A DNA stretch of 64,000 bases, taken from positions 763,189-827,188 of the forward strand of contig JAWQFM010000021.1 of NCBI GenBank assembly GCA_033442325.1, in the 5' to 3' direction. Made by a program: the position numbers and the translations under genes. Under the pieces are notes generated by a model, which saw only the letters and a program-made list of their open reading frames with translations, did not search any database and had not been told where the DNA came from. Position 1 is the stretch's first letter. Every line of letters starts with the position of its first letter. The DNA comes from Salpingoeca rosetta. Taxonomy: Eukaryota > Protista > Choanoflagellata. This document shows positions 14,601 to 23,290 of the stretch, piece after piece.

Positions 14601-17600
14601 GCGTGAGTCAAGGGTGGGGAACGGGGAGATGGTGAGGCAACTGGTGATGAAGGAACTGATGAAAAGGGAACTGACTGATAGTCGTGATGGTGTTGGCATC
14701 ATGGCAGACATTTTCACGCACACGCACACACGTTCACAAGGAATACGCACAGCTCACACAAGCACACACGCACGCACGCACGCACACGCACAAAACACGC
14801 ACACGCACTCACATGCAGTGTTTGGATGGCGAATGACGCCCGATGGCGACACGGAGCCGTGATCCAGGGCGAGCTCCTGGCATGGAACACCAATGCAGTG
14901 CGGCGTGACACCGCTCCACGAGCCATCTGTCTTGCACGACAGCTTGTCGTTGCTCTCAATCAGGTAGCCCGTGGCGCACGTGTACGTTGCCGTGCTCGGG
15001 TACTTGCGGCTGTTGCTTGTTGTAAATGAAGCGTGGTTGACCGTCGGGGGCGTCGTGCACGCAATGCCGACGCAGGAGCCCGCGCTTGTGCCGCCGCAGC
15101 CCGACAGGTAGTAACCAGCACTGCAGCTGCCACACGCGCTGCAGCTGTGCGTTCCTTGCGTCGTCTTGTATGTCCTGCAAGCAAGGCGTTGCGTTTGTTC
15201 GTGTGTGGTTGTGTGTGAGTGGTGTGGCGAATGAGTGCAGTGGAGAGAGAGAGAGAGGGAGAGAGAGAGAGAGGGAGAGAGAGAGAGAGAGAGAGAGAGT
15301 ACGCGTGGTCTCGTGGTCACGCAAGCGCTGAAGGAGCAATGATCATGATCACGTGACAACGTGTCCAGACGCCACAAACCACAGTTTCACACACAACAGG
15401 CATACCGCAACTGACCCTGAGTTGCAGTTGGCGCAGCCGCCTGGGCTTGTGCCGGAGCAGCCTCGTCGCTCCTGCCCTGCTGGGCACGATGCACACGAGG
15501 TGCACGTGCCGCCACTGGTGCCGCCGCAGTTGGCACGGTACTGCCCAGACGAGCACGAGCCACACGGGGTGCAGGAGCTGGCGCCCGCGCTTGGGCTGTA
15601 GTACGGTGTGTTGCACGCGCTGCACGACATGCCGCTGCCAGCGTAGCCGGCATTGCACGAGCACGAGCCATCACACGAGTCATCGCAGCTGATGCCCACG
15701 CATGTATCACAGCCAGCGTCGCAACTGTCATCGCAGCCACTGTATTGAGTGGAGGGTGGGCAACACAGATGGAAAAGGGAATGGGTTGTGATGGTGAGCG
15801 GCGATGGCATGATGTGAGGTTCGCGAAGGTTCAGCACAAAGCACACCTGGTTTGAGTGGTTGTGTGTGTGTGTGTGTGTGCATGCAAGCAGGCAAACTTG
15901 CAAGTTTCACAAAACGTACGCGTCACACGGCCCATCACAGGAGCTGTCGCAGTTGAAGTTACAGCCCGTGGGGGTGCAGCTGCTGTCGCAGCCGGCGTTA
16001 CAATCTGCCGCATGTGCAATGACATGGCGATCAGTGGCAATGAGTGACGATGACATGCGCGCACACACACAAAAGGGAAAAGTGCCAAGAGCATCAACAC
16101 GAAGGCAAGCAAACGCAACAGAGGTACAAAGCACAAACACTGACTGACCAGCGTTGCAGTTGCTGTTGCACGAGTCGTCGCAGCTTGCTGCCAAGTTGAG
16201 ACGGGATGTGAGTGTGTGTGAGTGAGATGGAGGCACGTGAGAGGGGAGTCACGGCAAAAAAAAGAGAGCTGTGCGCACATGCAAATGAGCTTACACACAC
16301 ACACACACACACACACACACACACACACACACACACACACACAAGTACCCACTCGCATGCACACGCACGCGCACGCGCACGCACTTACTGGGTTGGCAGT
16401 TGTAACCCACGTGGCAGTTCTCGTAGCACAGCCTTCTGTAATCATAATAGTAATTATAATAATAGTCATAAGGCAAGTTGACGCACTGGTCGCAATAACT
16501 GGAACAGGAAAGACGGTGCGATCATCGATTCAATGTGAGAAGATGAGCGAGAGTATGGCCGGAGAGAAATGCCAGAGAGGGCGAGCCACGAACCAAGAAC
16601 ACAGACAAAAGGAATCTCAACGAACAGTGCATACAAGAAAGAACACACGCGGGCACTCACTACATGCAGCCAGTGACTTCATCGCAGCTGGTGTCACACG
16701 AGCCGAGGCATCTGTCGCAGCTCTCATCGCATGATCCTGTGCACCTGCACACATCCAAGAGCAACCCAGAAACGACAGGCAGAGCGGTGTTAATCTCAAA
16801 TGGATATGAAAGTATGAGGTCATCGACTTGCTGAATTGTAAGCACACGCACGCACCAACACGGCCACTTACGATTGTCCGTTGCAGCCATCACAGCTTGC
16901 ATCGCATTCGTTGCAGTCGTCGTCGCCTGATATTGTTGATGATGCATCATGCACAAGCAACAGGCGTGAGAATGCAAGCGCACACATGCCTTCCCGCAAT
17001 GAACGAGGGCAAAGAAGCAAGGTGATGAATTCGTCTGAGACTTACAGCCTGAGTTGCAGTTGTCGTCGCAGTTCGAACATGATTGCCTGTGTCAACAAGC
17101 ACACACACACACACACACGAGCATCAGGAAGGAATGTCATGTTTTCGAGACAGAGCAAGGGAGACTTAGCATCACAACCTTGTGTCTTGAGACGTTGTAA
17201 TGGCTGGGCAAGAAAACGCATCGCACAGCTCCACAACTTACCCGTCGCAGCCCGTGTTGCAGTTTGAATCACACGTGTACGATGCTCTCACAGTATTCCT
17301 CCTCCGACGCTCCTGTCATGATGATTGCGTGTGTGTGTGGTATGTGTTGTGTGTTGTGTGTGTGTGTGTGTTGTGTGTGTGTGTGTGTTGTGTGTGTTGT
17401 GTGTGTGTGTTAGCGGCTGGCAAGCAAGTGCGCTGTTTGCGTGAAACCATGAAACTGAACAAACACAACACGAAGCGTTGGCAACTTACCCTGAGTGCCT
17501 GGATGCGGAAGAACGGGGACGTCACGTCCACGGGCATCTTGCCCTGTGCACAGAGCTCGCTGACGACGGCCCGGGCCGTGTCCTCGCTGCACACGCGGTC

Positions 17601-22374: not shown

Positions 22375-23290
22375 TATATTGACAATTGTGGTCAGTGTCA
22401 CAGCCTGCGAAGCAAATCCTTCCAAAAAACCCCAGGTTGATGCACGTGTCGCAAGCACTGAATAGAACAGTCAGTGCATTCGTTGAGTTCGGGTTCAATA
22501 TGAGAACGTGACCGAGACCAAGAGCAGACAACAACAATCACGAACGCATCTGCTGGAGAATAGCACAAACTACAGCACACTGGGGAAGTAACGCGCAAAC
22601 ACATGGCCACTCACTATGTGCAACCGGTGGTTGCATCACAGCTGGTGTCACACGAGCCGAGGCATCTGTCGCAGCTCTCATCGCATGATCCTGTGCACCT
22701 GCACACATCCAAGAGCAACCCAGAAACGACAGGCAGAGCGGTGTTAATCTCAAATGGATATGAAAGTATGAGGTCATCGACTTGCTGAATTGTAAGCACA
22801 CGCACGCACCAACACGGCCACTTACGATTGTCCGTTGCAGCCATCACAGCTTGCATCGCATTCGTTGCAGTCGTCGTCGCCTGATATTGTTGATGATGCA
22901 TCATGCACAAGAAACAGGCGTGAGAATGCAAGCGCACACGTGACTCCCTGCAATGCACGAGAGCAAAGACGCAAAGTGATGAATTCGCCTGAGACTTACA
23001 GCCTGAGTTGCAGTTGTCGTCGCAGTTCGAACATGATTGCCTGTGTCAACAAGCACGAATGCAAGCAACACACACACACACACACACACGAACATCAGGA
23101 CGGAATGTCATGTTTTCGAGACGGAACAAGACCTGGCATCACTATCTAGCAGCTTCCAGTGTCTTGAGCCTGTTGAAAGTGTAAGGAAACGTAAAGCACA
23201 GGTCCACAACAAACTCACCCGTCGCAGCCCGTATCGCAGTTTGAATCACACGTGTACGATGCTGTCACAGTATTCCTCCTCCGACGCTCC
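22375..23290 (-). pseudogene. Headless duplicate of five Cys-rich mini-exons (exons 3-7) of the giant receptor, with a divergent exon 7
   Basis: Aligns to ~16389-17335, and 22639-22911 is identical to 16685-16957. Splice sites and phases are preserved. No signal-peptide or JmjC exons lie upstream; it begins at a TG microsatellite next to the DUF711 gene and runs into the gap. Confidence 0.75.

Follow-up and report, generated by a model that had tools for sequence, protein, structure and literature searches.

Introduction

Unprocessed partial duplicates, of which the CYP21A1P/CYP21A2 pair is an example, exchange sequence with their parent genes by interlocus conversion. In donor-cassette systems, such as the chicken immunoglobulin (Ig) pseudo-V genes, the lamprey variable lymphocyte receptors (VLR) and the trypanosome variant surface glycoproteins (VSG), diversification draws on tens to thousands of donors. 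Here we analyze a locus of the choanoflagellate Salpingoeca rosetta that a first-pass annotation had likened to the latter systems. It lies in a 64-kb stretch of DNA (C21:763189-827188 of an assembly of 55.4 Mb in 68 scaffolds; this whole stretch is the window referred to below), where a giant receptor gene on the minus strand (hereafter W) has upstream of it a partial copy of its exons 3-7 (hereafter CAS, for the 'cassette'). We predict that CAS is probably an orphan fragment from another gene of the family to which W belongs, namely an old paralog of W that was subject to ectopic conversion, with a tandem repeat accounting for the loop that distinguishes the two.

The family itself is of a kind that has been described: the pertinent part of the account by Iyer et al. 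(2010; PMC2938197) presents receptor-like proteins of choanoflagellates with an extracellular JmjC domain of the MINA/NO66 type, and an expansion of these in Monosiga. Insofar as that part of the account defines them, the W family belongs to the same kind.

A partial copy of the CxxxC module upstream of a giant receptor gene

The features on which the comparison of W and CAS is built are as follows (positions in the window).

17490-19270, minus strand: W head, exons 1 and 2, absent from CAS; supported by Pfam matches, with the head-then-module order seen in nine paralogs
19270-18897, minus strand: W exon 1, with a signal-peptide-like hydrophobic stretch
18887-17490, minus strand: W exon 2, with JmjC_2 (PF08007, E 4e-14) and Cupin_8 (PF13621) by Pfam
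17312-17242, 17086-17046, 16926-16872, 16744-16661 and 16498-16389, minus strand: W exons 3-7, an array of CxxxC (Cys-Asp/Asn-x-x) repeats
23289-23219, 23040-23000, 22880-22826, 22698-22615 and 22457-22375, minus strand: CAS exons 3′-7′, from alignment and spliced translation
23300-23490, no strand: CA/TG-rich microsatellite, where W-CAS homology stops on the 5′ side and short-read contigs break
22203-22302, no strand: assembly gap of 100 N, 72 nt past the exon 7′ donor, where homology to W intron 7 still continues

Over the JmjC exon, W has 98% identity with 'hypothetical protein PTSG_11500, partial' of Salpingoeca rosetta, and the homologs show the same two families, JmjC_2 and Cupin_8. The small exons are followed by a larger Cys-rich exon and then by Sushi, cEGF, HYR, Ig-like and LRR exons that extend to ~2669, with Pfam returning nothing, or a weak TIL or DUF4215 match only, for exon 10. 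The JmjC, Cys-rich, Sushi and Ig-like domains thereby stand in order on one strand. Exon 2 ends and exon 3 starts in phase 0, making the JmjC-to-module junction compatible in phase; exons 3-7 give an open spliced translation with GT-AG sites, and exons 3-6 are conserved in a paralog on scaffold C6. W is predicted to produce a single transcript joining the JmjC domain to the CxxxC module.

CAS is, by alignment, a copy of ~0.9 kb, introns included, in the same orientation as W and ~6 kb upstream of it. The alignment and the translations bear out what had been read from the sequence at first pass, namely that exons 3-7 are duplicated upstream in the same orientation with open frames, the same phases and GT-AG sites, and that the peptides of exon 7 (110 nt) and exon 7′ (83 nt) are as given there, with an in-frame difference of 27 nt. 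Neither set of exons contains a stop, and all splice sites conform to AG (acceptor) or GT (donor), with the last donor of CAS (GTACGC) being the weaker. Two details needed amendment: the block is real but starts at 23289, not 23290, and while it does lie upstream of the gene, a spliced plus-strand gene (19964-21696) stands between the two and a DUF711 gene lies beyond exon 3′.

That CAS lacks the head with its signal peptide and JmjC domain, as was also claimed, is corroborated on several counts. Its spliced translation has no in-frame Met, a TGA directly precedes the exon 3′ acceptor and no minus-strand ATG was found within 23490-23700; hence, CAS cannot be translated alone as it stands in the assembly. 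The mRNA of the DUF711 gene, traced by RNA depth and contigs, begins at ~23498, with its ATG 309 nt and the mRNA ~210 nt from exon 3′. This gene thus occupies the promoter side on the other strand and leaves no space in which a coding head exon could fit. CAS thus has the makeup of an unprocessed partial duplicate, with introns kept and the 5′ exons and start codon of the parent absent, and it is presumably non-functional. The open reading frame across exon 7′ (22304-22537) has no protein match in a collection of 5.8 billion proteins.

Mosaic identity and probable gene conversion between W and CAS

The identity of W and CAS, taken segment by segment along the alignment, is sharply uneven.

Exon 3: 95.8%
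Intron 3: 79.5%
Exon 4: 100%
Intron 4: 91.5%
Exon 5, intron 5 and exon 6 as far as its 55th nt: 100%
Final 26 nt of exon 6: 73%
Intron 6: 59%
Exon 7 (framework): 60% of nucleotides; 11 of 23 residues identical
Intron 7, up to the gap edge: 64%
16685-16957, minus strand: W side of the 273-nt tract of perfect identity, the longest perfect run
22639-22911, minus strand: CAS side of the same tract, running from the last part of intron 4′ through exon 5′ and intron 5′ and 55 nt into exon 6′

A perfect run of 273 nt amid flanking divergence of 8-20% has p ~3e-11, which excludes chance. Because this long tract, with sharp borders against flanks of 91.5% and 73%, is embedded in diverged sequence, we infer ectopic gene conversion laid over an old duplication as its likely cause. 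The tract ends within exon 6 and does not carry the variable segment, and identity is 59-73% ahead of exon 7. At the diagnostic sites of exon 3 and some at the end of exon 6, CAS has the state of the C6 paralog and W the derived one.

The first-pass annotation had held that the loop of exon 7 differs entirely while the neighboring exons are nearly identical. In the light of the alignment this is misleading: since the entire 3′ block, which begins at the end of exon 6 and takes in intron 7, is diverged, the loop was not swapped onto a constant background. Over the 23 codons of the exon 7 framework, W and CAS differ by 0.40 nonsynonymous (dN) and 1.65 synonymous (dS) substitutions per site. The comparison of dN/dS for loop and framework that had been proposed, as run for the framework, thereby yields ~0.25 at a dS of ~1.6, i.e., the values of an old paralogous exon rather than of a swapped loop. 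All five Cys codons would survive 26 random changes in these 69 nt with a probability of 0.001; exon 7′ was therefore a functional exon through most of its past. Judging by this divergence, exons 7 and 7′ are old paralogous exons.

The Tyr-rich loop of exon 7 as a tandem repeat

The loop that had been compared to complementarity-determining region 3 (CDR3) of antibodies coincides with a short tandem repeat.

16438-16471, minus strand: Tyr-rich loop of W exon 7; Tandem Repeats Finder gives period 12, 2.8 copies, 81% matches and score 47

Its units read Y-D-Y-Y, Y-N-Y-Y and Y-D-Y, with D/N at the second place of a four-residue period, and this placement matches the register of the surrounding C-[D/N]-x-x array. 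The insert has only 20.5% GC, and six of its eight Tyr codons are TAT, as against 43 TAC among the 52 Tyr codons of the large W exons (p ~5e-4). Comparable arrays of period 12 or 24 make up the CxxxC exons of the paralog C29a. CAS has a single unit, G-F-F-G, at the position of the loop, while the C6 paralog has F-F-Y-F in a GT-AG exon model that we built here; if that model is right, the aromatic patch would be ancestral and only its length new. Accounting for the composition and the periodicity, the loop of W is likely to be a recent expansion of the slippage type.

Copy number, DNA support and invariance of CAS

The exon 3-6 block, with which a genome-wide count of cassettes had been recommended, occurs at just three places in the whole assembly (W, CAS and, at 71%, C6:1669532-1670176), and no array of silent donors emerged. 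The peptides of exons 7 and 7′ each match only themselves in the assembly, in a search of limited sensitivity. The unique part of CAS was detected in 16 sequencing runs from eight studies dated 2010-2022, with the same 0.92 of the sampled words in all of them; we attribute the shortfall from 1.0 to a probable 1-nt reference error at 22354, near a contig end; the base is absent from the DNA contig of an independent run of 2014 (X10). In that run, the unique part is a single contig of 427 nt at a depth of 92.8, vs. ~80 for neighboring single-copy sequence, and there are no mismatches over 22303-22668. The 273-nt identity tract has a summed contig depth of 135.8, ~1.6 times single copy. The full depth and the recurrence in 16 runs point to CAS being a real, single-copy, invariant locus and not a half-depth haplotype.

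A family of JmjC-headed receptors with divergent modules

The JmjC exon is found at no fewer than 12 loci, constituting a lineage-specific expansion of proteins with a JmjC_2-type domain, and nine of these (W, T, C6a, C6b, C14, C29a-c and C27) have related tails. The paralog T lies at the very end of the same scaffold (C21:1270809-1274554) and was compared with window positions 14753-18547. The three parts of these genes show contrasting degrees of similarity.

W vs. T: head (JmjC exon) 98-99%; tail 93-98%, introns included; no nucleotide similarity of the modules
C6a, C6b, C14, C29a-c and C27, mutually: head 94-99%
C14, C29a-c and C27, mutually: head 95-99%; tail 95-98%; modules mostly unalignable

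In T and W, exons 10-11 with their introns are the 93-98% identical part, and between these and the head lies a CxxxC module of 1.5-1.7 kb without nucleotide similarity; that of T is instead 80% like the module of C6:1488434. Across the family, the modules are C-[D/N]-x-x arrays with a period of 12 or 24 nt and lengths of 1.5-3.6 kb, and the few alignable pairs are W-CAS, W-C6b (75%), T-C6a (80%) and C29b-C29c (89%). In line with the first-pass annotation, paralogs of the family do differ strongly in this region. For the modules of T, C29b and C14, the assembly yielded no additional copies, and assembly gaps are present in seven other paralog loci that we fetched. That CAS might be a module missing from T, the 98%-identical paralog, was rejected, as T has a different module of its own.

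By these identities the family appears to be conversion-prone, the W-CAS tract being one more such exchange. Concerted evolution of heads and tails, with old repeat-rich modules escaping it, requires fewer assumptions than an exchange of modules, and both fit. A more speculative proposal, to which we assign a low probability, is that the family comprises germline-encoded variable receptors: conversion would keep heads and tails at 95-99%, each member would have a different module, orphan pieces would feed new modules and the aromatic inserts (YDYY repeats, GFFG, FFYF and LWWD) would contact ligands.

The assembly gap and the neighboring genes

CAS is flanked by two genes on the opposite strand.

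19964-21696, plus strand: spliced gene between CAS and W, with a Gln-rich N-terminus and hydrophobic exons; introns 20361-20504 and 21414-21618 are seen in RNA
23598-24921, plus strand: DUF711 gene, ATG at 23598; Pfam matches DUF711 in translated 23598-23900 (residues 2-65) and over 24150-24921

The former gene, which looks Yip1-like from its motifs, has no Pfam match in searches with its single exons. Beyond 21698, its RNA departs from the window and continues in a sequence that begins with TCTGCAAATGGACC, as witnessed by 24 reads in one RNA-seq run (X34), 33 in another (X35) and a contig overhang of 137 nt in a third (X17). This sequence, which follows a donor at 21696/21698 and continues the protein in frame, shares no 12-mer with the window, and its 30-mer is absent from the whole assembly. 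As an exon seen in RNA is missing from the assembly, at least one real exon is concealed by the gap, whose 100 N are a placeholder; the gene model is truncated by the assembly and its last exon or exons must lie inside the gap. From the CAS side, the X10 DNA contig that covers 22303-22668 extends 62 nt into the gap, which thus also contains further sequence of intron 7′. No reading frames cross it.

The 268 nt before the gap (21935-22202) are unique in the assembly, yet have neither a DNA contig nor RNA, and within the last 45 nt ACTAGT, ATGCAT and GTCGAC stand close together; a vector origin of this segment was rejected, as no plasmid matched it. In the plus-strand gene, the first exon (20025-20127) is rich in CAG/CAA and attracts very deep, partly fitting reads, which render its depth meaningless. 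Joints that seemed to go back at ~20025-20127 and 23593 were rejected as artefacts of the CAG/CAA repeats.

RNA from W, CAS and the paralogs

In the raw RNA-seq runs X34 and X35, the depth over CAS is 0 and 0.04-0.3, respectively, and the W exons identical to it are equally silent. W itself is barely expressed in the RNA runs examined. The reads on its JmjC exon are derived from paralogs: 38 of 38 have the letter of paralog T at 18238, and other sites have letters of neither W nor T. Their depth was accordingly rejected as a measure of W expression. For the same reason, RNA showed no junction between the JmjC exon and the module.

Over 18001-19106, the RNA reads come from other JmjC paralogs that are at least 95% alike and depart from the reference at numerous positions; at 18284, for instance, C is found in each of 59 reads, against G in the window, paralog T and the DNA contigs. 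An RNA contig from X17 that seemed to join exon 3′ elsewhere (loose end at 23269) was rejected, since it belongs to an unrelated gene on C13 that shares 16 nt by chance.

Origin of CAS

The explanation that we favor as the likely one is that CAS derives, as an orphan fragment, from an additional gene in a family of giant surface proteins, each with a signal peptide, an extracellular JmjC domain and CxxxC mini-exons, followed by Cys-rich, Sushi, HYR, Ig-like and LRR regions, of which CAS would retain the first five module exons only. CAS and W would be old paralogs whose Cys framework was kept by past purifying selection. Later ectopic conversion would have homogenized their 5′ halves, with the latest tract being the one of 273 nt that ends inside exon 6, and the length difference in exon 7 would stem from a 12-nt unit (Y-D/N-Y-Y) that expanded in tandem in W, in register with the four-residue CxxxC period. 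Several observations weigh against this. In CAS, the frames are open and every splice site and Cys is intact, whereas a pseudogene dead for long would be prone to losing them. One sense-strand read of X35 (~22375-22408) appears, from bin depths that offer a hint only, to end at the exon 7′ donor. The silence of CAS in RNA is uninformative because reads from the identical exons 4-6 of W would land in the same place and are equally rare. No contig bridges the gap or the microsatellite, leaving the placement of CAS between them unconfirmed, and CAS is proven to be a fragment on its 5′ side only, its 3′ end running into a gap that holds real sequence. On the state of the frames, a stop-free stretch of 27 codons like that of CAS occurs by chance in 31% of simulations, and conversion may maintain the clean state of the 5′ half. 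The intact frames, splice sites and Cys and the read that appears to stop at the exon 7′ donor also speak for an alternative to which we give a modest chance, namely that CAS is part of a longer, possibly intact gene, whose downstream exons are in the gap and/or which was wrongly joined at the CA microsatellite. Its lack of a head and a tail would then stem from the draft state of the assembly. The gap does conceal at least one exon of the neighboring gene, the homology to W intron 7 is still running at its edge, and gaps are frequent at the other fetched paralog loci. Against a hidden gene stand the DUF711 mRNA and ATG on the opposite strand, at 210-309 nt from exon 3′ and in gap-free sequence, and the finding that all matches of >35 nt to the W exon 8-10 region adjoin a JmjC head, i.e., there is no orphan tail in the assembly. 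Further, the gap is written as 100, the smallest among the family loci, and the 3′ end of the neighboring gene must share its space.

An alternative of a more evolutionary kind, which we consider improbable, holds that CAS is a conversion partner of W on an evolutionary timescale, with ectopic exchange, both with orphan module pieces and among paralogs, yielding module variants in a germline variable family; this would be mosaic evolution of the type known from contingency gene families and no programmed switching. The existence of the W-CAS tract agrees with it, as do the nearly identical heads and tails around unalignable modules, both in W and T (whose modules resemble those of C6b and C6a, respectively) and in C14, C29a-c and C27. 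The same pattern would result if concerted evolution spares old repeat-rich modules; moreover, no spare copies were found for three other modules, the sole tract seen homogenizes rather than diversifies, and the CxxxC arrays may be spacers under little constraint, altered through slippage of their repeats. The proposal of the first-pass annotation, that CAS is a silent donor from which a CDR3-like loop of an expressed receptor is diversified in a programmed or somatic manner, would be congruent with a promoter-less in-frame copy near W and with the evidence for sequence transfer, but we find it hardly tenable: only one donor exists, exon 7 lies outside the tract, exons 7 and 7′ differ throughout with dS saturated, the loop is a tandem repeat, CAS is identical in 16 runs from eight studies over 12 years and the receptor is barely expressed. 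Its own caveat, that the copy might be a misplaced haplotype or a paralog fragment, fares differently in its two halves: the paralog fragment is the reading that we prefer, while the haplotype fails on the single-copy depth. The location of CAS between a gap and a microsatellite and the 1-nt error at 22354 could indeed suggest that CAS arose through misassembly or represents an allelic haplotype of W's own exons; given that the 427-nt contig is at full and not half depth, that CAS is present in 16 runs and that its 3′ block is 40% diverged from W, this is largely refuted and retains practically no credence.

Comparison with known systems and significance

The W family resembles the described extracellular JmjC proteins in that JmjC_2/Cupin_8 follows a signal-peptide-like exon and precedes Cys-rich repeats, Sushi and Ig-like domains. 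It differs in that Monosiga is the organism of the pertinent part of that account (PMC2938197) and S. rosetta the one here, and in that the tail of W ends in LRRs. That part of the account does not mention a contrast between nearly identical heads and tails and the unalignable CxxxC modules that they enclose.

As a finding, CAS itself matters little, being a gene fragment with a conversion tract in a draft assembly, and the tempting claim of an adaptive-immunity-like diversification in a close relative of animals is unsupported and was removed. We found nothing relevant in the literature on gene conversion or allorecognition in choanoflagellates. Of potentially wider interest is a side result: a dozen-member family of giant extracellular-JmjC proteins with nearly identical heads and tails and unalignable modules may merit the attention of specialists. 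If this contrast reflects selection for diversity and not repeat instability, the family could provide a simple model for the origin of variable receptors before animals. Because S. rosetta can be genome-edited, the hypothesis on family diversity is testable.

With the donor-cassette systems of chicken Ig, lamprey VLR and trypanosome VSG, the locus shares a promoter-less in-frame copy near W and the movement of sequence between the two; in contrast to those systems, CAS is one donor, the tract is without the variable part and no variation of CAS is seen among the samples. The closer parallel is the CYP21A1P/CYP21A2 type of partial duplicate. The 3′ block of CAS is far older than its 5′ half (dS >1), unlike in that pair, and loss of function is here a prediction; on the other hand, CAS has kept its introns, has lost its 5′ end and start codon, stands a few kb off in the same orientation and shares with its parent a long tract of perfect identity with sharp borders in otherwise diverged sequence.

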